From: Octopus sinensis
Lineage: Eukaryota
DNA: 64,000 nt
NCBI RefSeq assembly: GCF_006345805.1
Contig: NC_043012.1
Location: forward strand, 36,642,001-36,706,000
Reading direction: 5' to 3'
In this document: piece after piece, positions 9,525 to 54,104 of the stretch
Position numbering within the stretch: position 1 is the first letter of the stretch
Layout: each line of letters opens with the position of its first letter
Made by a program: the position numbers and the translations under genes
The notes under the pieces: generated by a model
What the model saw: the letters and a program-made list of their open reading frames with translations, nothing else
Databases searched by the model: none
Told to the model about the DNA's origin: nothing

Positions 9525-9815
9525 ATGGAAATAATAAAGAGTCCGTTTGGAACAGATATGATCATTTTCAGAGATTATATTTATAGAAAAGATAAAGCCA
9601 AGTTGAATACCATGTACTGGCGATGTGTTAAAACGAATTGTAAAGGGAGATTGGTGAGCATTCTGGATTATAAAGAAAAAAACGTGGAAGAAATTCAACT
9701 GAAGGTCAGAGGTCAGCATTCTCATCCTCCTGATCCTGTGGATGTGAAAGCAAGGAAAGCATTAATTGAAGCGAAGTCAATTTTGAACTGCCACGAACTA
9801 CCCAGAAACGAAAAG
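9525..9815 (+). CDS. FLYWCH zinc-finger first coding exon V1 (97 aa, Mutator-transposase N-terminus-like), ends at phase-0 donor
   Basis: MEIIKSPFGTDMIIFRDYIYRKDK...MYWRCVKTNCKGRL...GQHSHPPD has the WxC-x4-C...HxH pattern. Donor AAG|GTAACC at 9816 (weak), after which the ORF runs into poly-T/poly-A intron-like sequence. Confidence 0.75.
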
Positions 9816-12619
9816 GTAACCGTCATTCGACTTAAATATTGTTTTTTTTTTTTTTTAGCAAAAAAAAAAAAAAAACTTTCGAAATATATTTCAGCTTCAA
9901 AATGATATTTATTTATTTTGTCTTTATTTACAAAACATTTTTTTATTTATAAAGTATATATTTAATAGCTGAATATGTATATCTGATAGACACACTCAAC
10001 TGTTTCTCTCTCTGTCTGTCTGCCGGTTAAATCGGTAGAAAGTTACAAAAGTGACTCTGGGGCCGACATTTTCGTGCAAACACATTCTCCAACCGACTTT
10101 AAATCTGAGTTTGTTTCTTTTTTGTCAATCGAATCATATTCTTTTGCTGTTGGTGAACTGCAGCCTTCCTATGAAACCTAGTGACTTCTTCTATAGTTTG
10201 GAACTAAGTATATCGATCTGTATTTGTAGAACCGGTTAGTTGGACACCAGATTAACAACAGCGATTTGGTTTTGAAAACCCTTGTAAACATTAACCACGC
10301 ACACACACACACATTTTCAATTTTTTTTTTTTTTCATATATACCGTCTGTTAAATTCCATCATTATAGTGCCCCGTGTAAAGTGCCGCGCAGTGAGATCG
10401 AACCCCAAATCTCGGTGTTGCAAAGCGAACTTTGTAACTAAACGGCCATAAATGCATATGGGCGGAGGTAAAGAATACGCGCCCCACCCGTTTTCGGTGT
10501 AACCCAAACCGCCGAAAACGGGTGGTGTATACTATTTATCTTTTACTTGTTTCAGTCATTAGACTGCGGCCATGCTGGAGTACCGCCTCCAAGAATTTCT
10601 TGTCGAACGAGTCAGACGCTTTCGGAAATTCCCGATGTGAATTTTCCGAGGCCTCTCCCCCATTCCCTTTTCGCGTGCGCACATTTTTTTTTCCTATTCG
10701 TTTAGAGGAAGTTGTTTTACACACGTTTTTTTTTTTGTTTATATACGATGGGCTTCTTTCAGTTTCCATCTACCAAATCCACTCACAAGGCTTTGGTCGG
10801 CCCAAGGCTATAGTAGAAGGCACTTGTCCAGAGTGTCACGCAGTGGGATTGACCCCAGAGTCACGTGGTTGGGAAACTAAATTCTTACCATGTGAATTTT
10901 CCGAGTCCCCACCCCCGTTCGCGAGCGCGCATTTTTTTTCATATTCGTTTAGAGCAAATTGTTTTACACGTATACTATTTTTCTTTTGTTCTTTTTTGCT
11001 CGGGTCAAGCGCTTTAGTTTAACCTGAAAGGCTTTTATAAGTCAATACTGTATCCTACTGTTTGTGGTGTTAGCAGTGCTATATATAGTTGTTTACAAGA
11101 CAGTGATTGTTGGTACCAAGTTCTATTCAAGTCCAGGCCCCTAAGGACAGTTGGTTCTTGTAAACAACTGTCCTTAGACAAAAGACTGACTTTTCATTGA
11201 CCAGTGTTTACTCATCCCATCTTCTGGTGTGGAGGATTTCCCGCTCCTTGGTACCAACAAGTTCTTATTCATTTCAGTCGTAGATACACAAGCGTTAAGT
11301 TGTCTGTCTATCTCTCCACATCTCTGTCCGTCCGTCCGTCTATCCATCCCAAAAATTGGTATTTTTTAATGAAATACCATTCAGACTGCATAAATTACGA
11401 TTATATCGGAATTTAATGTGGAAAAAAAAAAATGTTAGGCGCACACACGTACATACTGTTATATTCGTCATATTTATTACAGAATCTTGAAATTCTGAAC
11501 ACATAAAATGTGTGTGTTAGTATGTATGTGTTCACACCAACCTGTTTTTTTCCTTCTTTCACATTGAATCCTGATATGATCGTAATCTATACACACGCAC
11601 GCACATGAAGTCTGTTTTTTGACCATCGTGTCTCGTCACTTGTCGCGATTATTTCCTTCAGGAGGTTTCCCCAATTTCTTGAAATCAGCTCTCTTCGTCC
11701 ACTTTCCCCTTATATTTTCCCAATTTGCAGGTTCCTTCCATTGGAATCACTTGCCAATATTCTAACCAGGCGCCACCCCGTTCCACACACATCACGTCAC
11801 AGAACCAGTGCAGGCTTCTCTCTTGCACGTTACATCTGATTCCATGAACCAACGCGGTAGCCTCTATATAGTCACTCGACGCGCTAGAAACAGCAGCCAA
11901 ATCTCTCTCAAATTAACATCGTTAGCATCCTAAAAGATCGAACATCTTGATTAATGGAGTCTTGGGTTCCTTGCTTATAGGAAAATTACTGGATGGTCAC
12001 GGTTGGAATGTCTGTGATCATTGGTTTGTTCAATCAGGGCTTACATAGGACTATAAACCATAACATTCAATTAGTCTTTCCCTGACCCGTTATTCACTTT
12101 CTCTGTAATGTCACCGTACTGGTGTTTATAAGAAATACAGATTTTATCGCATGTAATCCTTTCTCGGACAGATATATCCATCAGAATGGTCGAATTTGTT
12201 TCCGCCTTAAATAATTCCAATCTCGTGGAAACATGCCATGTGTAATAACAATATCTTTTCTTTCTGAAACGAATTGTTTTAATTGCTTTTGTTGTTGAAG
12301 GGTCTGCGATATCTGCTCCTGTATCAGTTATTATTAAATCAACAGCTATTTATTAACAGAGTTTTAAATATCATTCACAACAGATGGATTGACTTAGCTT
12401 CCTGAATGAGGAACTGCCTGGTAACACCAAGAATGTCCTTTTTACATGCATTAATAAGAGAACATTTACGTGGTAAATATTCTTTAAACCCATTTTGACG
12501 TACGCGATTATTCTGCCAGTGTTTCCATTTGATTGTGGATGATATAGGGGTGTTTTCGTAGGTCTACACCCAGTTTTAACGAAGCCAGATGCTCGAGTTT
12601 ATTAATTATGAAATTCACA

Positions 12620-12895
12620 GACATTGCCAAGAAATCCGCCAACTTATCGCCGCCAATTCAGCGCGGAGTCAAGTTAGCGGTAAACTAACTCATCGCCTCA
12701 ATTAATTTACTTCAAAAATTGAAATTCATAGAGGTGAAATGGAATGGAAAAAAATACCTTTATTTAAAGAAATGGAATGTTAATTAAAATATCCTATTTT
12801 ACTAAAGTATAAATGTTTAAATCACTGGTTCGCTACTAATTCATCGCCGCCAATTCATCGCGAGCCAAGTCGTCGCTAACAAAACTCATCACCGA
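12620..12895. repeat. Short dispersed subrepeats aa(c/t)tcatcgcc, Mutator-TIR-like remnant upstream of V2
   Basis: Five near-copies: aacttatcgcc, aactcatcgcc, aattcatcgcc, aattcatcgcg, aactcatcacc, in two clusters. Confidence 0.45.
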
Positions 12896-13085
12896 ACCAC
12901 TTCATTATCAAACCAAATAATTACTAATCAGACTAAATTAACAAATTACAAGTTAGCTAATTATCAATTTAAATGTGACAGCGTTTACTTATTTACTGTT
13001 CGACGCTGGCAACTTCGGTTCATGCAATTAATTTAGAACTGTTTGAGCTACGGTTGCTTAAATTTCTCAAGGAGGCCCCTTCACA

Positions 13086-13394
13086 ATGGAACGTGTTTTC
13101 AGTCAGCGAGGCAAAGAGAAGTTCTCACACGATGGCTATTTGTTTATATTTGATAAATTTAGTAGGACCGACACTGACTTAATGTTTTGGCGTTGTGAAT
13201 TAATCGGCAGATGTAAAGCAAGAATTCACACAAAATTTGGCGATGTTGTGAAATTTATGAATACTCACACACATGATTGTTCACCAATAAAGGAGGTAGT
13301 ACAAATGGCCAGAAAAACGAAAAGCTGCTCTCGGAAGTCAATGGAAAGTCCAAATATAGTAATTGATGAAATATTGGGCAGTGTTTTCCGACCG
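13086..13394 (+). CDS. FLYWCH zinc-finger first coding exon V2 (103 aa), ends at phase-0 donor
   Basis: SQRGKEKFSHDGYLFIFDKFS...MFWRCELIGRCKARIHTKFGDVVKFMNTHTH is a classic FLYWCH of the MULE-transposase type. In-frame TAA at 13059-13061 lies upstream of the ATG. Donor CCG|GTAAGC at 13395. Confidence 0.8.
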
Positions 13395-14489
13395 GTAAGC
13401 ACTTAAAATAAGCATTTTTCCTTCTATATTTCTATGTACATAATAATTCTTTCTAATTTTGGCTCAAGGCCAGCAATTTTGAGAGGAAGAGAAAGTCAGT
13501 TATATCGATCCCAGCGTTAAGCTGGTACTTCATTTTATCGACCCAAAAGGGATGGAAGGTAAACATTGATTTCGGCAGGATTTGAACTCAGAGCCAGAAG
13601 AAATACTGCTAAGTACTTATGTCAGATGCGCTAACAATTCTGCCAGCTCACTGTCTTAATAATATATATATATATTTTTAATAGCAATTAAGCATAAATT
13701 AAATGAGTGGGAATTGAACCGGTATGTTAAATTAAGGCACTGTGACTCTCCACATACAACAAAGTTTGTTTCAACACACGAATTCACACAAGGAATCTTG
13801 CAAACCAGATACAAAACATTTTATTATTTTAAATAAATTTGTTTTCATTTCCAGTGGAATAATTTGAATAATTTCAGTATTTAAGTGTGAAGTGATGAAA
13901 TGGTTTGTGAAAAACTTGCTTGGCGCTGACAAGTTTTCCACGAATAGTCGTCTCAGCTTGTTTTCATACACAAAATGCTCCAAGAATGTCATTTCTGAAA
14001 GAAATACAGTTCTTCATAGCTCCTTAACTCATTCTCTTTCTTTATTCTTTATTCTTAATAGTTAATTCACCCAGAGTATCAGTAGCGTAGCTTGGGGTAG
14101 AGTGAGCCGCCCCTGGCGACGGTTTTCGGAAGGGGAGAGAAGAAACAATTTTGGGGATGACCTTCCTAATGCTAGCAACTTTACATCATCATCATCATCA
14201 TCATTTAACGTCCGCTTTCCATGCTAGCATGGGTTGGACGGTTCAACTGGGGTCTGGGGAGCCCGAAAGCTGCACCAGTCCAGTCAGATCTGGCAGTGTT
14301 TCTACAGCTGGATGCCCTTCCTAACGCCAACCACTCCGAGAGTGTAGTGGGTGATTTTATGTGCCACCGACACAGGTGCCAGACGATATATATATATATA
14401 TATATATATATTAATCAAAATAAAAACATGATGCCAAGGATGTTTTTATTTTGATTAATTTACTCCACCACCTACACCACCAAACGGTA

Positions 14490-15040
14490 TATACAGGTGC
14501 TTATAATTATCAAGTACTCACCCTGAATTTCTGTACCCAACTATATATATATATATATATATATATGGGTTCTCCTGCTTGTGTGGCATGGTACAGAGTC
14601 CTGTTGTCAGGTATAGGGTCTTCCAGCAGTCATCTTGACCCAGGGCAGCACTTCCTCCTTCAGGCACTTGAGGTAGGTCTCCGTGTTGAGTGCGAGGCCG
14701 TGTTGGAAGATAAATGGAAGCATGTGTCATCACTGGTGATCACTCCAAACACCATGATGTTGATTGGGTGTTTGATTTTTATCACTCTTGGTACATGTCC
14801 TCAGATTGACACCCAGACACTCTGAAATGTTCATATTGGAGCTTCTGGCTTGAATGCCATGCACTACAACATGTTTCCAAAATTCTGGCAGAGTGAATTG
14901 TGTCATGGTGCTGTTTCTCTCACAGACGGTGCCCAACTGACCCTACTGTACTGTGTAATCGACAAAATAAAAAACAAACAATGCGCATGCTCAAAATTAA
15001 AAATATAAAATGGCAACAATTTACTCATCGCACCTTGTAT
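14490..15040 (-). mobile_element. Internally deleted Tc1/mariner (maT-like) element remnant
   Basis: Minus frame gives FIFQHGLALNTETYLKCLKEEVLPWVKMTAGRPYTWQQDSVPCHTSRR, a DD-domain segment. Ends ta-caggtgc / gcaccttg-ta resemble imperfect TIRs. Confidence 0.65.
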
Positions 15041-15169
15041 ATGTATATATATATAAGTATACACAAAACATAAAGAAGAATGAATAATTATACATCTTCA
15101 AAAATTATTTATTATTCCCAAAATAGGGATAATGCTGTAAAATCCATATTGGTATCAAAATCTATACCA

Positions 15170-15400
15170 GCCCCTGTTCCCAAGGTCCCAGCTATCCCGT
15201 CTAGATTCAAGGGCACACAGCTATTTAACACCTGATGGATCTTCATTGAGTAGGGGGAGATGTTTTCAAGAAACAACTTGACCTCCTGCTATCCAAGCTT
15301 TGGATATTAACCTAAATCAAGGCAGGAACCTCAAAAGAGGGCAGCAGTGTTGAACTCCCTCCTTCAGCAAAAGCCAATCACATATGATTGGCCATTGAAA
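15170..15400 (+). mobile_element. CR1/L2-type LINE 3' end remnant
   Basis: Degenerate SRFKGTQLFN...DVFKKQLDLLLSK...SRQE...RAA-like reading. Confidence 0.45.
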
Positions 15401-16139
15401 GGGCTGAAAGGTATAAAAGAATTCAAAGAATTTACTTCCAATCCAATACGTGTTTCTGCTGGATAAATGCCTTAATGTCCTTTGACACAGTATTTAGGTG
15501 CATTTAGTTGGTTCAGGCGCAGTAAGTATTCATCCAAGGTAAACTATTCCCATGTAGCTTTGTCCATGTTCAAAGAACATGGATACAACCTGTTAACCCC
15601 CAATTTTATTTCTCTTTTTAATATTTGATAAGATGGATACAATCGAAACCGGTTATATTTTAAATCACTCACAAAAATATCAAACATTCTCTAAAATATA
15701 TTTTTGTGCCTTTTCCAACTTTATTTACTTTTTTAACCAAAATTCTTGATTTGTATGAACTCTTAACCCCTTTTCAACTATATATATATATCTGGCTCCT
15801 GTGCAGGTGGCACATAGCATGGCTGTTGCCAGTACCGCCTGACTGGCCCCCGTGCCGGTGGCACGTAAAAGCATCCACTACACTTGCAGTGTGGTTAGCA
15901 TTAGGAAGGGTATCCAGCTGTAAAAACTTTGCCAGATCAGACTGGAGCCTGGTGCAGCGATCTGGTTCGCCAGTCCTCAGTCAAATCGTCCAACCCATGC
16001 TAGCATGGAAAGCGGACTTTAAACGATGATGATGATGATAATTGGGGGAGAGGGATTCTCATCCAGATATCCAATTAAGTTATACAAGAAGGAATCATTC
16101 CTAATAACTGGCATTGCAGTATCATCATAAACAGTTATC

Positions 16140-16340
16140 AATGTAAAGGAGATGTCTTAGAGAGAAGTAACTATTTAGGAATCAGACTATTGGATCAGAT
16201 TATGAAGGTCATGGAGAGAGTTAGAGCTCAATTGATTTGTGACAAGATTGAGCTAGATGAGATGTTGTATGGCTTCATATCCAGAAAAAATACCACAAAT
16301 GTAATCTTCCTAATGAGGCAACAGTAGGTGAAATGTTTGG
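16140..16340 (+). mobile_element. RTE LINE reverse-transcriptase remnant
   Basis: Decayed KGDVLERSNYLGIRLLDQIMKVMERV...LDEMLYGFI...TTNVIFLMRQ motif containing stops. Confidence 0.7.
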
Positions 16341-16939
16341 CTCAGAGCACAGTAATAGCTTACTTTATGGGGACCCACTCTACGAGACCCTGGGTTTACG
16401 AGCTTTATTTTATTATAAATTTTTCTAGGACAAGATCCAAATTTTGAACCAAGTGCAAAAGTTTCTACTGCCATAACAAGTGCTTCTGCATATTACTGAG
16501 AAATTTATTGAGAGCAAATAAAAGCTTCTTCTAAGCAAACAACTCTACACTTGATTTTTAAGAAAGAGATCTACAAGTCTGTCTATGAGTGCTTGTGAAT
16601 CTGCAATCACATCTCCAAGTGATGGTGTGCATGTGTCTAGTGCGAGTGAAAGTGGTTCAGAAAATGGTTATAATAATATTTTTAATTATAAGTGGTCTTG
16701 ATATTCTTTTTGCTTTATATAAAATAATCTTTACATTCTACTGTTATTCTATTGCCATTTATTTATGAGTATTATAAATTTTACAGGTAAAATATTTTTC
16801 TGGGAACGAATTACGATTTATAACATTGCTACTATGGGAAATTATTGCTCTGTTTTACGAGTTTTTTGCTTTATAAATGACCTCCAGGAACAAATTAACT
16901 TGAATATTGAGGCATTGCTGCGTGTGCGCGCGTGTGGTG

Positions 16940-17045
16940 TCACTGATTTTTCCCAGTCGCATTTTCCCAGCCGACATTTCCTAGTCACATTTTCGTAGCC
17001 GACATTTCTCGACAGCAGTTTTTCTCCCAGCAAAACTACTTTAGA
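16940..17045. repeat. Tandem 14-15 bp subrepeats (ttttccca/ta-gccgaca), Mutator-TIR-like remnant upstream of V3; related motif at 10060-10100
   Basis: tttttcccagtcgca ttttcccagccgaca tttcctagtcaca ttttcgtagccgaca tttctcgaca; gccgacattttcgt also occurs near 10062. Confidence 0.5.
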
Positions 17046-17366
17046 CAATATTTTCTGTTTTTGTTTGCAATAATTCTATGAAAATTATAATTAAACACAA
17101 GTAATCAATAAGGAAATGGATTACATGACGGGAAATGTTTTTTCGTTATGTTTAATTAAGGCTGTAAATTAATTATTTTCACTGTAAAAAGGTTATCAAA
17201 CAATTAACTTCACAATTTCTCTTTATAAAATCGTCAGAAGATTTAGAAATAATAGCGATAAATACTATCAAGTTACAAAGTTTGGTTCTTTTAGTAATTG
17301 CTTCCAGGAATATTCGAGAAATATTCGTTTGCTATAATTAAGTATTAACAAATTTTATGCTGGAAT

Positions 17367-17729
17367 ATGGACAACAGCATTTCATATATCTCGAGTATCA
17401 GAGGCAAGGAAAAAGCTTGCAACAACGGCTATGTCTATGGGTTTGACAAGAAAAGCAAGCTGGACAACCAGCTGTTCTTTTACTTGTGCGAGAGACAAAG
17501 ATACGAGCAATGTCCAGCGAGGATCCATGTGAAACACGACACGGTGGTCAAACGCATGCATCTACACAACCATGTTCCAAACAGACCAAGGAAAAAAACC
17601 TTGAAAATAGCTTCTGGGATCAGAAGTCATGCGGCCGTGGCCGCGGCGGACCCGATGATGAATGCCATCGTGGCAAACAGGACAACCAATATACCACCAG
17701 CCTCTCTTGCAGCAGCAATGAGACCAAAT
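17367..17729 (+). CDS. FLYWCH zinc-finger first coding exon V3 (121 aa), ends at phase-0 donor
   Basis: SSIRGKEKACNNGYVYGFDKKS...FFYLCERQRYEQCPARIHVKHDTVVKRMHLHNH retains all four Zn ligands (W replaced by Y). In-frame TAA at 17346-17348 has no AG between it and the ATG, so this must be a first coding exon. Donor AAT|GTAGGT at 17730. Confidence 0.8.
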
Positions 17730-17850
17730 GTAGGTACAACCGTTTACTTTGCCTGTTCATCTACATATAGAAAACCCCCCCATATATATAAGAAAAAAAC
17801 ACTTTCTTGAAATGTATCCGGTACTTTCGGTACCTATACCGAAGTTACGC

Positions 17851-17882
<32 letters not shown>

Positions 17883-18036
17883 GTTATCAATAATAATATA
17901 GGGTGAAATCAATTAATTTGGAGTAATCATTAATTTCACCAAGTAGATTTATTCGGTGTGTGGTGAGGCAAATCGTTGCTAAACCCTTAATTACTTAGTA
18001 TATATATATTTATAATGTCTTTTTGTTGAGATAGAC

Positions 18037-18227
18037 CAGTGCTTTTCAACCTTTTTGCTGGAACGGAACCCCAAGAAAACATTTCACAGGCTCGAGGAAC
18101 CCCTGTGCAATGATTTAATTGTCTTATCTGCACAGGAGAATTAAAAATTACTGTCGATTTTAGCATTTTTGTAACTTCTTGCGGAACCCCTGGACTGTCC
18201 TGGCAAAACCCTGGTTGAAAACCACTG
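18037..18227. mobile_element. hAT (Charlie-like) MITE, copy 1
   Basis: TIR cagtgcttttcaacc / ggttgaaaaccactg; 8-bp TSD agatagac/atatagac. Confidence 0.85.
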
Positions 18228-18551: not shown

Positions 18552-18620
<69 letters not shown>

Positions 18621-18640
18621 GTCGTTTTGTTGATATAGAC

Positions 18641-19202: not shown

Positions 19203-19488
19203 CTTGTGTGTATATATATGTGTGTGTGTGTGCTTGTGTGTATATATATGTGTGTGTGTGTGCTTGTGTGTATATATATATGTGTGTGTGTGTGTGTGCT
19301 TGTGTGTATATATACATGTATGTGTGCGCGCGAGTGTGTATGTGTATACGAGTTCCTTTTTATGTGTTCGTTTGTGAGTGCTTGCATCGACGTTACTCTG
19401 TATATATGAGTGTGTGTGTGTGTTTCGTTTTACATCCGTTTTTCCACAGTAGTTATATATATATATATATTTCATAACTTTATTAATA

Positions 19489-20187
19489 CAGTCAACTCTC
19501 GCGCTACTTTGCCAGTTTTGCGCGGTCCCGCTCAAATAATTAACAAAAGATTTTTTACTATGCCACCTTCAACTCTCGCTACTATGTCACTTGTAAACTG
19601 AAGCGTACGCAACTTTTCGAAATTTTGTACATTTCATATTTGTAATCTTGTGGAAAAGTTCAGAAAGTGGCACACAATGTCAGCTCAGAAACGCAAGCGG
19701 ACTGAGTTTACGCTGAAGGAAAAGAAGGAGATTATCGATGCTGCGAAAAACGAGCCGAACCAGTCTAAGCTGGCTAGAGAAATGAGCAAGAAATGGGGCA
19801 TCGAAGTCAAGAGGACCACGGTGAAGGGCATTCTCAACAGAAAGGATGCAATCGAGGCAGCCATCAACGTTGGAATTCCATGGAAGTGCACGAAGCTGAC
19901 GCAATCTCACAACCCGAAGCTCGATGATGGCGGGCTAATGTGGCTGAAACAAGCAAGAGGACAGAATCTGCCGGTCAGTGGTGATCTTTTGAAGGAGAAC
20001 TTAATAAATTTGGAAGTCTTCTTTTTACCATTGCATTGAACTTCTTATTGGCCTTACTTCCTACCCTGTGAATTTTTATTCGTATGTTCAGTAAATTTTT
20101 GGTTATGTAGTGTTTAGATAACAGACCCTCGGTACTATGCCACTTTGGCTCAGTCCCGCAGGGTGACATAGTAGCGAGAGTTGACTG
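19489..20187 (+). mobile_element. Internally deleted Tigger/pogo element retaining the CENP-B-type HTH DNA-binding region (ORF from ATG 19677)
   Basis: TIRs cagtcaactctcgc / gcgagagttgactg flanked by TA. ORF RKRTEFTLKEKKEIIDAAK...QSKLAREMSKKWGIEVKRTTVKGILNRKDAI...HNPKLDDGGLMWLKQARGQNLPVSGDLLKE matches pogo/Tigger HTH domains. No DDE domain is present. Confidence 0.9.
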
Positions 20188-20271
20188 TAGTGACTTCGAA
20201 TACCACTTTCAAGTGTGTGTATATTTTTATATGACTACGTGTATGTGTTATGCATGTGTGCATATATATGT

Positions 20272-21788: not shown

Positions 21789-21887
21789 AATGCTAACTAC
21801 AGCACCAGAAAGAAACTAAGCAAATCTTCAAGAGCAAAACCCATTTCTGACTTGGATCCTTTCAGTTCCGAAGTTAGTAAAGTAAAG
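21789..21887 (+). CDS. Internal coding exon A (99 nt, phase 0/0): NANYSTRKKLSKSSRAKPISDLDPFSSEVSKVK
   Basis: Acceptor tttcatatttttgcag|, donor AAG|GTAAGC. Only the phase-0 frame is open; the other two frames stop within 30 nt. Confidence 0.6.
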
Positions 21888-31228: not shown

Positions 31229-32689
31229 TACATTATAAAGTACACGTAATTACATAACAGCACTGGCGTACGAACACGCACGCACGCTCAAAATATGTTG
31301 TTTCTCAACTTCATTAATCTTTTAAATGATTAATATTGAAATTAAAAACAAAAAATATTTTAACCCAGAGAAAAGAAACTTCATTGGGTTCCGTGAATGA
31401 ATATCTCTGCCGAAATATCGAACAAATTGGGACAAGAAGCAACTTCACGAAATATATATAAACATTTGAAAGTTTATAGTAATTTCGGCATACCCTCATA
31501 AAAGAGTTTGATTTCTCCATAGCTTCCAGAAAAATGGATATTTGTAATGAAATTTTCTACAAATTCCTCCTAGATAAGGTGGATTAATATTATATCGGAA
31601 TTTAATGCCAAAAACAATTAAGGGCGCGCACTGACACACACCACATACCTTGAAATGAAACTCGAAATTTTGAAAAAAATTATGTGATTTGTTTCAGTGT
31701 GCAATGTGTGCGCGCTCAGTATTATTATTATTATTATTATTTTTAGATTAAATTCCAATATAATCGCAACCTATACGACCAGAAAGTTGCTTGTACAAAA
31801 TTTCATTATAAAATATCAAATTTTCTGAAAGTTATGAAGAAAAAAAGTCAGGGCGAGTTGTGTTGGTATGCTGTAACTTCCAAGCAAAAGTAATTTTCTG
31901 TCCGGGTTGATAAAATTACTTACGATCCAACGAATTTTGAAATGTTTGAATAATAGACACTCACTCTGACTATTTCACTTCATTTTTTATTAATCATTTG
32001 GTTAACCAAATCGTTCGGTCAGCTACGTTTGTGAAAGTCCTACTGTCATCGTTCGCGATCCCATCATCGACATGCTCGCTTTACTCCAAGTCTGTCTCCT
32101 AGTTTATAAATATTTATGCTTATATGGACGTGATTGAGAAATCCTCGTGAGATACAACAAAATGTATTTGAATGCACGGATCTTGCAAAACCAAATACAA
32201 AACCCTAAACATTTGAAAAATACGGAAAAATAAAATAAAAATATGACTAGATGGTTACGTGTGAAAATCTGGTAGGAATCGAAACCTTCACGTCGAGTAC
32301 TTGCTTTTTTTGGTATGTATTGTAGTTTATAAGCTTACTACACTCAATAGAATATAGTCTTGGATAGAGAGACAAATGCAGCAGAGATAAGGGAGGAGGT
32401 GTGCTGGTTCTTAACACGATCGTTTGACAGTGACTTTACAATGACAGAGTGTAGCTGTCATTTTTACTGACTCATCGATTTGCCTGTCACACAGCAGCCA
32501 GTCACAAATACACGCAATTAAGTTCACAGCTTTCCTCCTTTACAGCCACAATATGCCGTCGCGATTTGCTGTCATCTCATTCATTCATTGATTAAATTTT
32601 CAATAATAAACAACCTTTCCTTTCCCTTCTTTTGCCAACCAATTCACTTTGTAATCATTTGACACATGTGCGTCATTAAGCGAGCTGTT

Positions 32690-32716
32690 TCTCACGTGAT
32701 TCGGTTCCTCCAATCA
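32690..32716 (+). promoter_or_regulatory. Possible promoter motifs (TCACGTGA E-box, CCAAT) upstream of V4
   Basis: tcacgtga at 32692-32699 and ccaat at 32710-32714 in a repeat-free, CpG-containing block. They lie unusually close to the ATG, so this is tentative. Confidence 0.3.
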
Positions 32717-32763: not shown

Positions 32764-33981
32764 ATGTCGGATGTAGCTGACTCAAAGCCATTACCGTCTT
32801 CGCTTACGCAATCCTTTATGAATGACTTCAACGCTGATATTGTTAGCAGAACCAAAAGCGATAAAAATGTTCTGTTAGTTGCAGATGATCCCCCTCCTGC
32901 AATGAATTCTATAAACTTCATAAACCTAGACGAATGCAACCAGCTGGCTGGTTCGAGGAACACTAAACGGGTCACCGCCAGTTCTGTTAAATTGTTTCGA
33001 GCCTTTTTAAAGGAGACCAATAATGGAAGGACTGATTTTGAAAATTTTGATGAAGAAATCCTTATCAATCATTTGATAACTTTTTTTAAGCGGGTAAGAA
33101 AACCAGATGGTGATCTCTATACGAAGAATGGTTTGCTGTCAATTCGTTTCGGACTCAGAAGGCGCTTGTTAGACTTACGTAAAGTTGATATTACTAAGCA
33201 CCCTCACCTTAATTCAGTTTTTACTGCTCAGATCAATAAATTGAAACGAGAAGGCAAAGGAGATATAAACCATTACCCTCCCATTAGTCACGATGACATG
33301 TTCAAAATTTATAGTTCAGGGATTTTGTCACCCGACACGCCGAAAGGGTTGTTAAGGAAGATTTTCTTTGAAACTGAAATGTTTTTTTGTCGACGAAGTA
33401 GAGAAAACCTAAGGGATTTGAAAGGAAGTCACTTTAAAATTGAAACCGACGATCAGGGCAAAAAATATTTGACCACAGATTTTGATCCATCATTTGGTGG
33501 TGGACCAATCAAACGGATTTATGAAACTGGCACAGACATATGTCCCGTGAAAGCTTTCCGCAAGTTTTTGCTGAAACGTCATTCTAGCTGTGAGGCGTTA
33601 TTTCAACGTCCCGTGGATATAATTCCGTTTTCTGAGCAGGATCCTTGGTTCCATTGTTCAGCTCTCGGCCTCAATAAACTCGCCAACATGATGAGAGAAA
33701 TTTCTTCAGAAGCCTGCCTGTCCAAGATATATACAAATCATTCCATAAGAGCTACTTCAAAATCGGTCTTTGATCTCGTCTGGAACGGGCTCTTCTCGCA
33801 GAATTCAGCGAATCCAATAGCACCTGCCTCTAGTGAGATCAGCAATATTAGTGACACAACTTCTGTTTCAAGGGAGAAGCCAGGGCAGCGACGGCCATCG
33901 TCATCTCGAGGAAATGAAACTGATATCGATTTGAAATCGAACTTAGACATACAAGAAATTGAAAGGAAACACGCCCCTGTG
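32764..33981 (+). CDS. Crypton-derived DUF3504 tyrosine-recombinase-like first coding exon V4 (406 aa), ends at phase-0 donor
   Basis: DGDLYTKNGLLSIRFGL...PPISHDDMFKIYSSGILSPDTPKGLLRKIFFE...FFCRRSRENLRDL...YETGTDICPVKAF...LFQRP...LSKIYTNHSIRATS resembles the DUF3504 domains of KCTD1/KIAA1958/ZMYM-type proteins as I recall them. In-frame TAG at 32728-32730 lies upstream. Donor GTG|GTGAGT at 33982. Confidence 0.85.
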
Positions 33982-44560: not shown

Positions 44561-47299
44561 TAAGTACTCTTCAGCCTCGCAGATGCACTGTCTCTTCTTC
44601 TTGCTTATGCTACCACTACCATAATGGCCTCTGGCTGGGCTCATGCCATCTCCACTCAGGCATTCTCTCTCCACTCATCTCTTCTCTTCTTCACATTCTT
44701 GTATCCAACCCTTCTCCTACCCCAGCACTTGTCACTCTTCCCAATCCTTCCTCACCCAGAATGTTATCCCTTTGAGATCTCCCCCCCCCATGCCCCTCCT
44801 TCTTGCTCATATCTTCCCCTACAAGTGGAAAAGTTCAAGAGAAACATTAATAGCATCAATCTCTCCAGTGTTGGGGAGTCCTTGAAGGTGATGGAGACTG
44901 GCCTTTCTTTCTCTACCAACTAACTTCTCCCCCCCTCCCCCCAAATTTCAGCCCCTTATCTGCTGAGAATCGGTAATGCGTCAGACAAAAACACCTTTTA
45001 CTATTTTTTTCCAGCTCTTTATGTTTTGAGTTCAAATGTTGACAAAATCAACTTTGCCTCCATCTTTTGCTTGATCAAATAAAGTACCAGTCAAGTACTG
45101 GGGTTGATGGTATTGCGCCCCCACCCCATCAAAGAAATTGCTGGCCTTGTGCCAAAATTTGAAACCATTATTATTATTATTATTATTATTATTAAGGCAG
45201 TAAGCTGGCAGAGTTGTTAGACGATATGCTTTGCAGTTTTTCTTCTGGCTGTTCACATTCCGAGTTCAAACCTCACCGAGGTTTGCTCTTCATCCTTTCA
45301 GGTTCAACAAATTAAAGTACCGGTCAAGTACTGGAGGTTGGTGTTATCAACTTGCCCATTCCTGCTAAAAAGTTATCAACTTGTGCCAAAATCTGAAACC
45401 ATCACTACCACCACCACCACCACCACAACCACCATCACTATCATTAATCTTATCATCACCACCACAACCATTATCATTACCACCTCCACCACCACTACAT
45501 TGGGGCATACATTTTCAGAATCACTTGTGCTTTGGGCAAAATACAGTAACCCTTCGACTATTGCGGGTGTTACCTTCTAGAACCCCCCGTGGTAGGTGAA
45601 AATCTGCGAAGTAGAAACAGTACTGTGTATTTTTTTATTATTTTTAAAATTGTATATATTGGTGTTATTAAGGGCATTCAGCTATAGAAACACTGCCAGA
45701 TCAGACTGGAGCCTGGTGCAGCCTCCTGGCTTCCCAGACCCCAGTCGAACTGTCCAACCCGTGCTAGCACAGAAAATGGACGTTAAACAATGATGATGAT
45801 GATTTATTTTATTATAAATGCAAAAAAAACACTGTGGAGGAATCGATGTAAGCTTAATTAATAAACCGTAATAGGTGAACTGTGATATGGCGAGGGATTA
45901 TTCTACCTTGTTGTATTCAGTTGTGTTTCATTGCATTCAGTGTTCATATCTCACCAAAGGGTCAGTCGTGCCTTTCATGGTTCTGGGGCCAATGAATTGA
46001 ATGCTGGTCAAATACTGGGGTTAATTAAACCAACTGTTTCTTCTCTCTTCTGATAATTTGTAGCACGTGTATGGAAGTCAGCAATTAATGTTTTTAGAAG
46101 TCCATGGTTGGCAGAATTGGTAAGGTGGTGAGCTGGCAGAATTGTTAGCACGCCGGGCGAAATGCTTAATGGTATTTCTTCTGCCGTTACGTTCTGAGTT
46201 CAAATTCCGCTGAGGTCGACTTTGCCTCTCATCCTTTTGAGGTTGATAAATTAAGTACCAGTTATGCACTGGGGTCGATTTAATTGATTTGATCTGTTTG
46301 TCTGTTCTTGTTTGTCCCTTCTGTGTTTAGCCCCTTGTGGGTAGTAAAGAAATAGGTATTTCGTCTGCCGTTACGTTCTGAGTTCAAATTCTGCAGAGGT
46401 CAACTTTGCCTTTCATCCTTTTGGGGGTCGATTAAATAAGTACCAGTTACGCATTGGGGTCGATATAATCGACTTAATCCGTTTGTCCTTGTTTGTCACC
46501 TCTGTGTGTCGCCCCTTGTGGGCAGTAAAAAATAAGAAGTGGTAAAGTGTCAGATAAGATGGGGAGGGAGGGGGGAGAGAAGGTGCAAAAAGGAGGCGAA
46601 TGGTGGGTGTGGTGAGGGGGGTGGAGAGGAAAGGTAACTGAGAAATCCAGGTGATGTAGTATGTGCTTAGTCTGTTCTTAGGTAATAGAGGATTGATGGG
46701 TGGTAGGGGATGAAATGTGGGGGTGGGGGCAGAGAGGATGGAGGTAAGCATTACGGAGGTGGTCTTCTTGAGTGCAGTAGAATTGAGAACCTAAAACCAC
46801 TTTGGTAATGCTTATCTCCATCCTCTCAGCACCCCCCTCACATTTCATCCCGATACATTGTGTGTGTGTGTGTGTGTGTATAAGTGCCAACATACGAAAC
46901 TCTTGGACCTTGAGTCACTCTTGCTTCTGCTAAATATTAACAAATACACACACTCACAAACATGTACATGTATCATCATCATCGTTTAACGTCCGCCTTC
47001 CGTGCTAGCATGGGTTGGACGATTTTGACTGAGGACTGGCGAACCAGATGGCTGCACCAGGCTCCAATCTTGATCTGGCAGTGTTTCTACAGCTGGATGC
47101 CCTTCCTAACGCCAACCACTCCGAGAGTGTAGTGGGTGCTTTTTACGTGCCACCGGCACAGGGGCCAATCCGGCGGTACTGGCAACGACCTCGCTTGAAT
47201 CCTTTTACACATGCCACCGGCACAGGTGCCAGTAAGGCGACGTTGGTAACGATCACGCTCGAATGGTGCCCTTTTACGTGCCAGTAAGGCAGTATGTAT

Positions 47300-48068
47300 A
47301 TATATATATATATATAACACATACATACAGTTTTGTCTATCCTGTTTGCATTGTGAAACCTCTTTATCTGTCTGTGTGCCCCTCTGTATATATTAGTTAA
47401 TCGTCTTCAGCGCTTAGCTGTTTAGGGTCCGATCCTTGTGTGATTTGAACCCTGGAAATAAAAAGACAAAACGAAATACTACCTATCTATTTTGTCATCC
47501 GCTCTCGTAATTTTTTATCCATACACCACCACCATAACAGTTTCTAACACTTACACGGCGAGTTTACGTAATTTTGGTGGCGGGAAAGTCGATTAAACCG
47601 ACCTCAGTAGGATAAATGATAAAAAAAAGATATTGCAGTATTTAACACCAGGGCTTTGTTATATACCACTTGTTTATGTTCTTGCTTCTAGAGGCCACTA
47701 CAAGTTTTTGTATCAGGAAGGACTTTTCCGCCGTAAAAGCCTCTTTCTTACCAGCATAGGAAACAAATGAGCGCAAAACCGATCACGATGACCCTCTTTC
47801 CCCCAACACCTTGTCTCGGTTACCATCAGATATATACGAGATCAGTGGTTCCCAACCTGTGGTCCGCTTGGGTAACACTGGGGGTCTGTGAACTAAATTT
47901 AAAATTTCATATATATATGGCTGTGGTAAGTAGCTTGCTAACCAACCACACGGTTCCGGGTTCAGTCCCACTGCGTGGCACCTTGGGCAAGTGTCTTCTG
48001 CTATAGCCCCGGGCCGACCAATGCCTTGTGAGTGGATTTGGTAGACGGAAACTGAAAGAAGCCTGTCG

Positions 48069-48131
<63 letters not shown>

Positions 48132-49102
48132 TTGTGTGTCTGTGTTTGTCTCCCTAGCATTGCTTGACAACCGATGCTGGTGTGTTTACGTCCCCGTCAC
48201 TTAGCGGTTCAGCAAAAGAGACCGATAGGATAAGTACTGGGCTTACAAAGAATAAGTCCCGGGGTCGATTTGCTCGACTAAGGCGGTGCTCCAGCATGGC
48301 CGCAGTCAAATGACTGAAACAAGTAAAAGAGTATATATATATATATATATAACACATACATACAGTTTTGTCTATCCTGTTTGCATTGTGAAACCTCTTT
48401 ATCTGTCTGTGTGCCCCTCTGTATATATTAGTTAATCGTCTTCAGCGCTTAGCTGTTTAGGGTCCGATCCTTGTGTGATTTGAACCCTGGAAATAAAAAG
48501 ACAAAACGAAATACTACCTATCTATTTTGTCATCCGCTCTCGTAATTTTTTATCCATACACCACCACCATAACAGTTTCTAACACTACACGGCGAGTTTA
48601 CGTAATTTTGGTGGCGGGAAAGTCGATTAAACCGACCTCAGTAGGATAAATGATAAAAAAAAGATATTGCAGTATTTAACACCAGGGCTTTGTTATATAC
48701 CACTTGTTTATGTTCTTGCTTCTAGAGGCCACTACAAGTTTTTGTATCAGGAAGGACTTTTCCGCCGTAAAAGCCTCTTTCTTACCAGCATAGGAAACAA
48801 ATGAGCGCAAAACCGATCACGATGACCCTCTTTCCCCCAACACCTTGTCTCGGTTACCATCAGATATATACGAGATCAGTGGTTCCCAACCTGTGGTCCG
48901 CTTGGGTAACACTGGGGGTCTGTGAACTAAATTTAAAATTTCATATATATATGGCTGTGGTAAGTAGCTTGCTAACCAACCACACGGTTCCGGGTTCAGT
49001 CCCACTGCGTGGCACCTTGGGCAAGTGTCTTCTGCTATAGCCCCGGGCCGACCAATGCCTTGTGAGTGGATTTGGTAGACGGAAACTGAAAGAAGCCTGT
49101 CG

Positions 49103-49165
<63 letters not shown>

Positions 49166-49365
49166 TTGTGTGTCTGTGTTTGTCTCCCTAGCATTGCTTG
49201 ACAACCGATGCTGGTGTGTTTACGTCCCCGTCACTTAGCGGTTCAGCAAAAGAGACCGATAGGATAAGTACTGGGCTTACAAAGAATAAGTCCCGGGGTC
49301 GATTTGCTCGACTAAGGCGGTGCTCCAGCATGGCCGCAGTCAAATGACTGAAACAAGTAAAAGAG

Positions 49366-49370
<5 letters not shown>
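47300..49370. repeat. Near-identical tandem duplication, unit about 1034-1035 bp
   Basis: ORF-track duplicates at 47767/48801 and 47783/48817. Units are joined at (TA)n tracts; a one-base indel is visible (aacacttacac versus aacactacac). Confidence 0.95.
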
Positions 49371-49427
<57 letters not shown>

Positions 49428-49612
49428 AAGAAAGAGATAGAGATAGGCGCAGGAGTGGCTGTGTGATAAGAAACTTACTTTCCAATCACCTGATTCCACG
49501 TTCAATCCCACTGCGTGGCATCTTGGGCTAATGTCTTTTCTGCTATAACCTCGGGCCGATTAAAGCCTTGTGGGTGGATTTGGTACCCGGAAACTAAAAG
49601 AAGCTGATCGTA

Positions 49613-49683
<71 letters not shown>

Positions 49684-49840
49684 CGTGCGTGCGTGTATCT
49701 GTCCCCCACCATCGCTTGACAACCGATGTCAGTGTGTTTTCGTCCCTGTAACTTAGGGGTTCGGCAATAGATAACGATTAAGTCACGGGATCGATTTGTT
49801 CGTCTAAAGGCGGTGTTCAAATAATTGAAACAAGAAAAAA

Positions 49841-49898
<58 letters not shown>

Positions 49899-52800
49899 TG
49901 CGCGCACGCACGCGCACACACATACACACACACAAAAGGATAAGCATATTAAAAGGGGTCCGTGGGAAAACTCATTTAAATAAAAGGGGTCCTTGGTAGT
50001 GAAAAAGGTTGGGGAACCACTGTCCTAGGTTCTGCAATGTTATCACCGGTTCGAATGTGTTAGTGGCGTATTTGAAAAGAAGCCGTTTACTGTGTTTTGT
50101 CATGGAGAAAATTTCTCTCTGCTTGGCGCTCCCACCTTACAATATTAGGTTCTGTTACAAGGGCTTGGACGTCCACAAAGCCTTTATGCTCCCCAAACGA
50201 CGGAACTTCTACTGGTTGCCCGACTTGCTAGATATAACACCCACAATTCCCTCATCATGCCCCGTCATCTTAAAAATATATAACGTAGTCCTAGATACAC
50301 TTGGCCTGCCAGAAAGAAAAGGAACAGAAAAAGCGAGAGAGTCGCGACTAGAACGTCTTTGGTCATTGATCTGTTTGATCAGATCTGAGCAAGAGCCAAA
50401 CGGCAACATGGCCCTCGTTTTAGTTTTAGTATTATCTTTGTGTTGGTCATTTCATTAAAACAATATTTCGTTGGAGAAAATGTGAGAAAAGATAACGTCC
50501 TTGAACGTCTGCGCGGCCGTCCTCCGCCATTCCTGGTGTGAACCTATAGCATTTCATGATTTACCTCAGAGATTCCTTTAGGAAAGGCATCAACACCTCT
50601 AACTCCCACTAAAATCATTTCAAACTTCGTAGTTCAGTCCAAATGATGTAGGCCCGTGTTTCTCAACCAATTCTTTTTACATATGGACCCTCATAGCCAT
50701 TTGATGTTAAAAAAAACCCCAATTATTATATTTTTAGAATTAAATAGTATTACGAATTGTATAAAAGAAATTGTTAAAAATGTTTTTCCTATTGTAGGAA
50801 AAAAAAACCCCCAATGGTTCACAGAATTTAATTTTGTCCCTGTTCATCTCGAGTTAAAATCCTGGCCGCCGATAACCCTCTCTTTTCTCGGTGTCTGGGT
50901 GAGTTGATTAAACCGACTCTACGCCGCCTCTCATCATATTCTCGGTTCTGTATCAGTGGGAGAAACCAATGTAATTACTGGTACCAGAATATGAAAGGGA
51001 TAAAGTTGTCAGGGAGTCGAACCAGCGACTCAGTTTCGAACTCCGACTGGAATAGTTTCTCTTCAGTTAGTCCCTTACTTATCTCGTTGGAAGAGCCATG
51101 AACATCACAACATCCTCTTTATCATTTCGTATAGTAGTAACACAAAATTGGTTTCTGTTTTTTTTTTCTTTCTTTTCTATTTTTTGTTTGTTTGATGAAT
51201 TGAATTCAGTCCTGCCAGGATTCGAACTCGAGATCTGGGAGAGACTAAGTTATTGTAACGAGTTTTATAGTCCAACGCTCTGATGTCACAACTGCCTCAG
51301 CTTGCTTCTATTTATATTAGAAATTGTTAGCATTATTCGATTGTTGTATTAACACCACCACCACCACCACCACCCGCCACCGTCATTATTATCATTACCG
51401 TCCCCACCACCGTCACCCTAACCATTATCAACACCACCATTATTATTTTTATTACCACCACCACAGCCACCGCCACCACCATCATCATCATCACCATTAA
51501 CAACAAGTCGACAGTCTATAACAACAAATATGGCAGCTGGTATTGAAGGTTTTTGTTGTTCTGTTGTTTTGTTTTGCTTTTGTTTAGTTTTGTGTGTTTG
51601 TGTTTTTCTTTTATTTTCCTTCATCTGAAAGGAATTCTGATGCTATCATATTTGACTATATAGTCAGTCTGGTAACATTGTTATTTTGCTAACAATGTGA
51701 GGTTTTTTCGCCTTGATTTTGTTGTTGCTGTTGTTAACAACACTACCGCCACCACCACCACCACCACTACGTAGTAATAGTAGTTGTGGTGGTAGCAGTA
51801 GTAATAGTGGCAGAGCATTGTAACTTTTAATTGTTCTCTAACAAAGCACTTGGTATTCCCCCTCCTCTCCGTGGAACTGCACCCAAATGTTATGGTGTAA
51901 ATATATATATACATATATATTATATAATATATTATATAATATATTATATAATATATTGTATAATATAATATATATATATATATATATTATGCATCTCTCT
52001 GTTAAATATATCTCTGGGTAGCACGCAATATGTGTATGAATCAGTTGTTGGTTTTTCTTCCCTTTTTCCCCCCCAAGTTCAATTTAAATGTTGTTTCGAT
52101 GTTGGAAGAAATAAAAAGTCAGGAATGAGTGAATGGAGGGGAGGAAGGGTGAGGCGAAAAAAAAAGCTTTTGGTTTTAGTAGAAAGAATAAGAATAATAA
52201 AAGAGAGAGAGAGAGAGGGCGAAGCGATGAAGCTAGAAAGAGTTGTGTGTGAAGTAGGTTTGCTGTTGGTAGTTAGGCAGCTGCTGTCTGCTTGCTTGTT
52301 CTACTTTTCTCTTGAAAACCAACCTACCACCATCAGCAGCCTGCTGTTTGTTGTTGTTTACAGTTAAACTGCTTGTCGATATAACAACCCTGTTGTTAGG
52401 CTTACTCAGAGAGGGGCGGCAGTCAGTTGTTGGTGGCTAGCTACACTCAGTACACATCGATTTACTGCAGTCTGACCTAAATCGACCATCACACAGAACG
52501 GTAAACAACGCACCACAAGCTCGAGAACATTCGCTGAACGCAGTTTAATACACATGTACTCAAGTTGTGATTTGGTTAGAACATCTCAGCGCCCAGCTTC
52601 TCTTCTTCTGCTCATATAAAACCAAGCGATATTCTGTCTAATGTCTCATGTCTGCTCTTATTTGAACAGTTTAGTCGTGGTTTAGCCGTTTTTTTCCCTC
52701 ACTTCTCTGCACAGACTCGTGTAACAATTTTCATTTGATATATTAAAACCAGTCGAAAGTTTTTGATGTCGAATCTCTCAGGTAAATCTTATTTCACAAC

Positions 52801-52928
52801 TTGACACAACAAGCTAAGCTTATTACTGTGTTAATCGGATTAAACAGTTTTTTTTTCTGGTTGGCAACGTGGCTGACGCACAACTGCAAAGAAGCTTTGT
52901 ATAGAGAGTCTCTGTTGTGACATCCAAA

Positions 52929-54104
52929 ATGGCCGACCCTCCGTTCGTTGGAGACCTCAATACATCTGCTGTAGATGGTGGTTTGTACCTCACAACAGCG
53001 TTGAACAACGAAGAATTTGAAGGTTTATTAACGAAAGACTCAAAGTCCAGTCAACAGGCTGAGAAATACGCGGTGTTGAAATTCCGTCACTATCTGACCA
53101 AGCGAGGTGAACCATTGTCTTTGGAGAATTTGTCCTACCATGTGACCAGCGGTGACATGCCTGCCAAGGAGCGACTGCTTACCTACCTGACCACCTTCTT
53201 TAACGATCTCAGACGGACTGATGGCAGCAAATATAAATTCAATGCCCTCAGAAGTATTCGTTACGCCTTAAATCGCTTTACTTTGAAGTTTGGAGTTGAT
53301 TTTCTCAACGATGCTTATTTGAAAAAACCATTAAATGATGCATGGGTAGCGTTAGGCGAATGCCTGAAGCTGGAAGGGAAAGCCGATGTCCAGCATCACG
53401 ATATTCTATCGTTGGAAGAAGTTAAGAAAGCATATGCCTGGTGTAATCAAAATCTTTCTGATCCTGATCGACTCCAAAAGAGAGTTTTTATGGATATTTA
53501 CCTCTACTTTGGACGCCAGTGCCGACAGAATTTACCACACCTGACCAAAGATAATTTCGGCATGGACGTCGATGCCAACAACCAGCGTTATGTTTACTTT
53601 ATCGACAAAACCGGCGACACAACCCGTAAAAGCAACACCCAGTTAGTGATGAAAGAACGCGTGGGATTTGCTAATTGTCCCGTAAAGATGTTCCTGAAAT
53701 ATGTTTCCAAATTAGACCCTCATTACCCGCGATTCTTCTGTCATCAAAAGCTAAACGTTGACCCGCTCTACCACACGGTTTGGTATACAAAACAGCCGAT
53801 GGGCGAGAAGAGAATGGCCGAGTTTATGAAATCCATTTCGAACGACGCCGGTTTGTCTAAAGTTTACACAAACCATTGTTTGCGTTCCACGCTGCTGTAT
53901 CTAATGGAAGAAGGTGGGTTGGATGCTAAGGATGTCAGTCGAATAACTTGTAGTCAATCATCTCACGAAGTATCCATACCCGAGGTCCCTTCACCAGCAC
54001 AACGTCCCTTACAAACACCACACGCCGCCGCCGCCACTACAAACACGTGGCCCTCCTCACATTCTGGCACCTCACTTCACTCTCGGAATAAAAAATCATC
54101 TCAG
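52929..54104 (+). CDS. Crypton-derived DUF3504 tyrosine-recombinase-like first coding exon V5 (392 aa), ends at phase-0 donor
   Basis: DGSKYKFNALRSIRYALNRF...DPDRLQKRVFMDIYLYFGRQCRQNL...NCPVKMFLKYVSKL...PMGEKRMAEFMKSISNDAGLSKVYTNHCLRST. ATG context caaaATGg; in-frame TAG at 52902-52904. Consensus donor CAG|GTAAGT at 54105. Confidence 0.85.

Follow-up and report, generated by a model that had tools for sequence, protein, structure and literature searches.

An octopus BTB gene with alternative Crypton-derived first coding exons, and FLYWCH exons upstream as candidate further heads

In the insect genes mod(mdg4) and lola, a constant set of BTB exons lies at the 5′ end, and the variation is carried by 3′ terminal exons, some of which are trans-spliced. 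In the protocadherin and UGT1A clusters the exchangeable part is the first exon, and the first exons of a cluster are tandem-duplicate paralogues. Here we describe a locus of Octopus sinensis that resembles both. The DNA analyzed, hereafter the window, is a stretch of 64,000 nucleotides (assembly GCF_006345805.1, contig NC_043012.1, positions 36,642,001 to 36,706,000, forward strand), and it is the 5′ part of the gene LOC115220336. Five exons on its + strand are at issue, three encoding a FLYWCH domain (FLYWCH-1, -2, and -3) and two encoding a DUF3504 domain (exons A and B). We call the protein module encoded by such an exon a head. The best explanation of the evidence taken whole, and one we regard as very likely, is that swappable transposon-derived heads are joined to one BTB body. 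For exons A and B this alternative-head model is proven on the annotated junctions.

The likeness to mod(mdg4) and lola is that one locus gives many isoforms, each combining a common BTB/POZ domain with an exchangeable, exon-encoded module. The module of mod(mdg4) is FLYWCH, the family of three of the exons here, and BTB pairing permits mixtures of isoforms. The polarity differs. At the octopus locus the variable modules are N-terminal, ATG-started first exons, probably with promoters of their own, and the BTB domain lies 3′ of them. The modules proven here are also of the Crypton/DUF3504 type, not FLYWCH or C2H2. With the protocadherin and UGT1A clusters the locus shares first exons on the same strand, separate start codons, donors of a single phase, and one acceptor (shown for A and B); the exons lie on one strand in collinear order. 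Whereas the first exons of those clusters are paralogues, the modules here are unrelated or distant and come from different transposon superfamilies: A and B are 30% identical, and the FLYWCH exons and a CENP-B exon found in relatives encode unrelated folds.

Heads made from transposons have precedents. In vertebrate KCTD1 isoform b, a single-exon Crypton-derived DUF3504 domain inserted 5′ of a BTB gene gives an alternative long isoform, and the two isoforms of KIAA1958 differ in which single-exon DUF3504 domain they carry (Kojima and Jurka 2011, PMC3212892). LOC115220336 unites these features, and the catalytic tyrosine is lost in all three genes. It differs from them in that A and B retain HxxR and in that at least one more superfamily, pogo, is present in relatives. 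It differs from KCTD1 also in its BTB domain, a classical POZ (PF00651; near KLHL, ZBTB, and BACH) rather than KCTD/T1, and it is no orthologue. LOC115220336 is thus outside the mod(mdg4)/lola, protocadherin/UGT1A, and KCTD1 families: its BTB domain is C-terminal to the variable part and not of the KCTD type, and its heads are not paralogues of one another. Host–transposase fusion genes are similar in that a transposon DNA-binding domain is spliced to a host effector domain. In a 2023 paper (PMC10027918), most octopus CENPB and THAP factors are said to carry BTB, and several O. bimaculoides proteins combine an N-terminal CENPB or THAP domain with BTB. That paper catalogs the proteins singly and takes the BTB domain as transposon-derived, and it describes neither a multi-head BTB locus nor DUF3504 heads.

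The evidence for the shared body comes from annotated proteins. Exon A (32764-33981, + strand, 406 codons) ends at the phase-0 donor GTG/GTGAGT, the slash marking the exon boundary, and is the first coding exon of isoform X1. Exon B (52929-54104, + strand, 392 codons) ends at the phase-0 donor CAG/GTAAGT and is the first coding exon of isoform X2. The protein XP_029646297.1 (P0020 in our set), [quoted passage not shown], has 897 aa. Its residues 1-392 are exon B at 100% identity, after which it reads ...RNKKSSQ/EENNCELYPGVNN..., with the break exactly at the predicted donor 54104. The constant part therefore opens with EENNCELYP right behind the predicted donor (...SSQ/EENNCELYP in X2). An in silico chimera of the 32764-33981 translation and the 505 constant residues was an exact match to XP_029646296.1, isoform X1. 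X1 and X2 differ only in the A/B exons, and their 505 C-terminal residues are identical, so the donors at 33981 and 54104 join one acceptor. The gene in O. bimaculoides, LOC106879774 (X1-X3), has the same isoform pair plus a variant without one 10-residue repeat, and an independent model, UniProt A0A0L8G1G0, joins B to the same body.

The 505-aa constant part was not found by tblastn in the 64-kb window or in the short downstream parts of two orthologous contigs (L006 and L007, below), and no constant exon was seen on inspecting the open frames of 54.1-64 kb. The constant exons are located past 64000. A sequence-only reading of this DNA had proposed A and B as interchangeable N-termini for a shared C-terminal region beyond that position, and had named a shared downstream acceptor as the way to check it. 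Both points are borne out by the RefSeq gene models, in which the two donors have one acceptor and the shared residues are absent from the window. Chance origin of the A and B donors is excluded because the junctions are annotated and the donor is kept in four other assemblies.

The shared exons encode a 10-residue coiled-coil repeat, a classical BTB/POZ dimerization domain, and a long disordered tail. The repeat is present in four to five copies of the unit QKQQAEF(M/I)EA. The BTB/POZ domain (PF00651, E 4.7e-11) covers residues 521-621 of XP_029646297.1, within the part shared by X1 and X2, and the C-terminal end of the constant part is a long low-complexity tail. The closest solved BTB domains are those of gigaxonin, KLHL/KLHL3, BACH1, and ZBTB, and the domain is of the classical type. 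Orthology to KCTD1 was considered and ruled out, the match being classical PF00651 with no KCTD chain among 53 structure matches. The copy number of the 10-residue unit varies among the isoforms and models P0020, P0170, P0171, and P0177, giving 505 or 495 residues. Alternative splicing of the coiled-coil repeat, allelic variation, or a discrepancy between gene models could each account for it.

Exons A and B each appear to encode a complete, non-catalytic Crypton-derived tyrosine-recombinase-like module, a QRICH1-like N-domain followed by DUF3504. In Pfam the DUF3504 matches of A (E 8e-6, 26.4 bits) and B (E 1e-6, 28.9 bits) both fall just below the 29.7 cut-off, and weak QRICH1 and Phage_integrase matches are also present. 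An exhaustive HMMER search with exon B as query returned 2527 relatives at E<=1e-3, many of them above the cut-off for DUF3504, Phage_integrase, or QRICH1, which at the sequence level secures the homology of A and B to the Crypton tyrosine recombinase/DUF3504 family. At their level of identity to each other, A and B could have arisen by an old duplication or by separate captures. The HxxR motif is retained as HSIR in A and HCLR in B. No tyrosine follows it up to the exon end in either exon, as judged by inspection and a weak alignment to the integrase 3nkh. With the catalytic tyrosine gone, A and B are predicted to be incapable of recombinase activity, like other DUF3504 genes (PMC3212892). 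For the DUF3504 heads, DNA binding is a putative function. A word-indexed homology search with FLYWCH-2, A, and B as queries gave only read-through open reading frames (ORFs) of other species. This search missed Octopus RefSeq proteins in the collection although they match the queries at 100% identity, so its negatives do not mean absence; the spliced protein XP_029646297.1 was recovered by the exhaustive representative search instead.

Orthologous loci were compared in L006, a 237-kb ENA contig, and in L005 and L007, two Logan contigs; all three are probably from other coleoids. Exon A has orthologues in all three, with the phase-0 donor GAG/GTAAGT, and exon B in L006 and L007, with the phase-0 donor CAG/GTAGGT. 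DNA identity between the window and these exons is 67-73% with synonymous sites saturated; at the protein level, the A orthologues are 62-63% and the B orthologues 78% identical to their counterparts in the window. The order in L006 and L007 is A, a CENP-B exon, and B, all on the same strand, with A and B 5.4-5.9 kb apart. The intervening exon (L006 13167-13682; L007 3959-4471; on the A/B strand) starts with ATG and ends at a phase-0 donor, ATG/GTAAGT in L006 and CAG/GTATGT in L007. It encodes two pogo-type Pfam domains, CENP-B_N (E 2e-11) and HTH_Tnp_Tc5 (E 6e-16). Because no counterpart of it is found in the window between 34 and 52.9 kb, heads appear to have been gained or lost between lineages. 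Capture of modules from two or more transposon superfamilies, as proposed, finds support here: Crypton-type DUF3504 is present twice in the window, and the pogo CENP-B/HTH exon in relatives.

Comparing L006 with L007 also marks where the exons end. Conservation is about 84% over each exon and the 130-640 nt upstream of it. For exon A, conservation ends 8 nt past the donor. For the CENP-B exon and B, it goes on past the donor at lower identity, with indels starting directly after the donor; in the CENP-B exon these measure 7, 10, 4, 5, and 9 nt, none of the five a multiple of three. No well-conserved private downstream exon lies between the heads, and dN/dS is 0.29 for A, 0.12 for the CENP-B exon, and 0.08 for B. 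The stop of conservation and the indels at the donors, the lack of private exons, and the low dN/dS together indicate that A, the CENP-B exon, and B end at genuine exon boundaries under selection, which call for a partner further 3′. The same comparison shows purifying selection on A and B at a fixed locus, with synteny kept in L006 and L007 despite saturation relative to the window. Orthologous loci and dN/dS had been suggested as a check on the cluster, and by that check the order, strand, and phase-0 donors of A and B are kept, at the dN/dS values just given.

A promoter-like block lies directly before exon A (32660-32714, + strand). It consists of TGACACATGTGCGTCA at 32660-32675, the E-box CACGTG at 32693-32698, and CCAAT at 32710-32714. 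The same three elements occur in the same order upstream of the A orthologues in L006 and L007, despite the saturation of synonymous sites, and this conservation to other species argues for a promoter directly before exon A. The conserved upstream blocks in L006 and L007 precede each of the exons there. No promoter motif common to all heads was found.

These findings fit the following pathway. The coding sequence of LOC115220336 begins in one of at least two alternative exons, A or B, a step we count as shown. Choice of promoter or first exon would set which head sits on the common BTB body. Heads 3′ of the chosen one have no acceptor and would leave with the intron, as in the protocadherin and UGT1A clusters. 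Since BTB domains dimerize, the isoforms could then pair combinatorially. The three FLYWCH exons 5′ of A would descend from Mutator-like elements and be extra heads of LOC115220336, a step we hold to be somewhat more probable than not, and they may join the BTB body via a small cassette exon at 21789-21887.

The three FLYWCH exons lie upstream of A on the + strand, each a candidate alternative first coding exon with a phase-0 donor: FLYWCH-1 at 9525-9815 (97 codons, AAG/GTAACC), FLYWCH-2 at 13086-13394 (103 codons, CCG/GTAAGC), and FLYWCH-3 at 17367-17729 (121 codons, AAT/GTAGGT). The sequence-only reading had placed all five exons at these positions, each with its own ATG and a phase-0 GT donor, and every coordinate was re-derived and found correct. 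The start ATG of all five lies in a good Kozak context, with a purine at -3 in each and G at +4 in four of the five, and no exon has an earlier in-frame ATG. The closest in-frame stop 5′ of the ATG is at 72, 27, 21, 36, and 27 nt in FLYWCH-1, -2, -3, A, and B, respectively, in agreement with the earlier description of stops 27-45 nt upstream or closer in four exons. In each exon the donor GT falls between codons shortly past the domain. A single intron phase, phase 0, is used by all five window exons and by seven of seven orthologous exons in L005, L006, and L007.

How much this pattern says depends on how often such donors occur. Counting as donor-like any site that agrees with at least seven of the nine consensus positions, we found 2.5 per kb per strand, and the chance of a phase-0 donor-like site in a tail of 100-250 nt is roughly 10-20% per exon. 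Because such sites are this frequent, the five-exon donor pattern taken alone is suggestive and not conclusive. The probability of (1/3)^5 put forward earlier for five phase-0 donors starts from phases that we confirm, and is too optimistic in one respect, since phase 0 is the most frequent intron phase.

The domains of the FLYWCH exons are well supported, with Pfam scores of 38.8 bits (E 1.1e-9) for FLYWCH-1, 49.5 (4.9e-13) for FLYWCH-2, and 47.7 (1.8e-12) for FLYWCH-3 against a cut-off of 23.6. By inspection the C...C...HxH zinc ligands are intact in all three, and FLYWCH-3 is 38% identical to FLYWCH-2. FLYWCH-2 has a colinear orthologous locus in a close relative (Logan assemblies L001-L004), in which the ORF, the ATG context, and the CCG/GTAAGC donor are kept. 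Compared with L001, FLYWCH-2 has a dN/dS of 0.24, 100% identity over the domain core, and no indels within the exon, whereas its upstream flank shows many indels and an identity of 79-89%. This contrast indicates that FLYWCH-2 is constrained. Its origin can be traced through L008, a 914-bp contig from a cold-seep metagenome scaffold of the South China Sea, whose FLYWCH head has 71-77% protein identity and about 80% DNA identity to FLYWCH-2. One in-frame stop interrupts the L008 head, which then runs directly into a transposase-like tail with the motif TNNHAEAAN. The tail has no Pfam match; we take its TNNxxExxN-like motif to be a mark of Mutator-type transposases. L008 looks like an internally deleted Mutator-like element of an animal, and by its tail motif FLYWCH-2 appears to descend from such an element.

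The candidate cassette exon (21789-21887, + strand) sits 3′ of the FLYWCH exons and 5′ of A. It was found in a scan for splice sites and open frames, and has an excellent acceptor and donor (TTTTTGCAG/AAT...AAG/GTAAGC), a length of 99 nt or 33 codons, and phase 0/0. It encodes NANYSTRKKLSKSSRAKPISDLDPFSSEVSKVK, and no conservation evidence was found for it. It may be a cassette exon for the upstream heads, and it is possibly one of two phase-0/0 internal exons that had been claimed without coordinates; for that claim it is the one good candidate, the other two candidates being weak. Predicted FLYWCH-headed products begin MERVFSQRGKEKF, MDNSISYISSIRG, or MEIIKSPFG and continue into EENNCELYP, with or without NANYSTRKKLSK...SKVK. 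Splicing of the FLYWCH exons into exon A was considered and rejected on inspection: from the stop upstream of A to the start codon, AG occurs only once, and it is out of frame. By eye, no further domain exon was seen in the translated long + strand frames, of which no Pfam scan was made.

On balance, we favor the view that LOC115220336 has one or more FLYWCH exons among its heads. The three exons share the strand of A and B, their domains are intact, their donors are in phase 0, FLYWCH-2 is constrained, the sequence read past the donors of FLYWCH-1 and FLYWCH-3 resembles junk, and FLYWCH is paired with BTB in mod(mdg4). A further pointer comes from the supplement of the 2023 octopus paper, which lists Ob_79774 among the O. 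bimaculoides FLYWCH genes (PMC10027918). That paper names genes by the final five digits of the LOC number (77732 is LOC106877732, 72008 is LOC106872008, and 75595 is LOC106875595), so Ob_79774 should be LOC106879774, the orthologue of LOC115220336.

Several results weigh against extending the alternative-head model beyond A and B, or against its details. Only X1 and X2 came up as isoforms of LOC115220336; both are gene models, and separate promoters for the heads are suggested by conserved upstream sequence only. The FLYWCH-bearing product of Ob_79774 itself was not seen. Exact look-up in a collection of 15 billion proteins returned none of the three FLYWCH heads joined to the constant part, whether full or minus one 10-aa repeat; these chimeras were built without the cassette at 21789-21887, and isoforms containing it would escape the look-up. 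The claim of five heads on one C-terminal region thus stands for A and B through X1 and X2, and is without such a match for the FLYWCH exons. The donor of FLYWCH-1 is weak (GTAACC), the genomic stop of FLYWCH-2 lies 3 codons past its donor, which would make it a possible complete single-exon gene of 106 aa, and the 10 kb upstream of exon A in L006 contain no FLYWCH exon.

Much of this would also be expected if only A and B belonged to the BTB gene and the FLYWCH ORFs were separate small single-exon genes with unused donors, domesticated Mutator DNA-binding domains like human FLYWCH2 that lie on the same strand by happenstance. The orthologue in L001 keeps the same 106-aa ORF, no FLYWCH-plus-constant isoform was retrieved, donor-like sites are frequent at 2.5 per kb, and FLYWCH exons are missing near the L006 locus. 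Yet the reading frames of FLYWCH-1 and FLYWCH-3 run past the donor into low-complexity tails of 29 and 26 codons, all three donors are in phase 0 and so match the constant acceptor, and PMC10027918 lists LOC106879774, as Ob_79774, as a FLYWCH gene, its product itself not having been seen. The three stand-alone FLYWCH ORFs were equally missing from the protein collection on exact look-up, as was the constant part alone. We give stand-alone genes a minority chance, well short of an even one. Decaying remnants of Mutator-like transposons without host function are a good deal less probable still. The window is rich in transposon debris, and the nearest match to FLYWCH-2 by sequence, the L008 head, is an apparent Mutator-like remnant. 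Against decay, each of the three ORFs has remained intact through its 97-121 codons, zinc ligands included, in an AT-rich genome, none has a transposase remnant 3′ of it, and FLYWCH-2 shows the low dN/dS and the indel-free, fully conserved core described above beside a diverged flank with indels. The least probable account, which we consider very improbable, makes the five exons first exons of independent genes with private downstream exons. Each exon does have its own ATG and a conserved upstream region, but for A and B this account is refuted, since both carry the identical 505-aa constant part and belong to a single LOC in each of two species, and no conserved private exons lie between the cluster members in L006 and L007. 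One BTB gene with swappable heads therefore remains the explanation we prefer.

The architecture is not confined to this gene. The proteins P0067 and P0080 also have an N-terminal DUF3504 followed by BTB. P0080 clusters with Acanthosepion pharaonis CAE1321133.1, and over 100 Logan contigs, each 3-4.5 kb long, contain its whole ORF of 926-927 aa, which points to spliced mRNAs. Its BTB domain is 38% identical to that of the octopus protein and its head 30-36% identical to B and A, so P0080 is a paralogous DUF3504-BTB gene of the same build in a cuttlefish-like species. The P0080 head of about 400 aa is also seen as read-through ORFs of 406-409 aa, as would be expected of a single exon spliced to the BTB body.

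A wider reading can be offered tentatively, with somewhat less than even confidence. In it, a coleoid family of BTB-scaffold genes served as landing pads, at which nucleic-acid-binding heads encoded by transposons of unrelated superfamilies were captured serially as promoter-bearing phase-0 first exons, with combinatorial BTB dimers and lineage-specific turnover of heads. The captures might include Crypton tyrosine recombinases twice, pogo CENP-B/HTH in relatives, Mutator FLYWCH three times in Octopus, and THAP-BTB and CENPB-BTB at other loci. Such a family could have arisen convergently as a counterpart of mod(mdg4)/lola, varying at the N-terminal rather than the C-terminal end.

The literature searched contains no mention of LOC115220336, LOC106879774, or their accessions, and no combination of DUF3504 with BTB outside KCTD1. 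The suggestion that such a system was undescribed in cephalopods needs narrowing, since the two DUF3504 isoforms are already known from RefSeq in two octopus species and the 2023 paper noted CENPB/THAP-BTB proteins. At the level of the locus, the reading of several superfamilies heading one BTB body, in several assemblies and with lineage-specific heads, is partly demonstrated and appears new. It would mean that transposon domains became host regulators by repeated capture at one locus and not by a single fusion, through the simplest possible splice arrangement: an own start codon, a phase-0 donor, and a shared acceptor. Should the FLYWCH and CENP-B heads prove true, the pairing of BTB with swappable transposon modules would have arisen independently in molluscs with a polarity opposite to that of insect mod(mdg4), and the locus would be a tractable case of head gain and loss between octopus and relatives. 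The locus may also be relevant to the expansion that has been reported for transposon-derived factors of cephalopods, and it offers a defined setting in which to test DUF3504, a domain of unknown function.

The rest of the window is animal DNA rich in short and long interspersed element (SINE and LINE) and microsatellite debris. A truncated pogo/Tigger-like element occupies 19487-20189, with perfect 22-nt terminal inverted repeats at 19569-19590 and 20163-20184, TA-CAGT-type termini, and an extra partial left end at 19487-19502. It contains a CENP-B_N ORF of 129 aa (19650-20039) that breaks off within the second helix-turn-helix (HTH). This ORF was ruled out as another head: it is truncated, lies between the perfect 22-nt repeats, and is unrelated to the CENP-B exon of L006 and L007. 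Within a long intron, an exact tandem duplication (47296-49365) has a period of about 1034-1035 bp and 100% identity over the compared parts, and identical ORFs recur in it at 47767/48801 and 47783/48817; it is either very recent or an assembly artifact. Non-LTR retrotransposon fragments lie at 1717-2520 (- strand), 5312-7049 (- strand), and 61953-62749 (+ strand). A reverse-transcriptase piece (RVT_1, E 7e-7) is present at 6320-6625, and some of the fragments are presumably LINE C-terminal tails.

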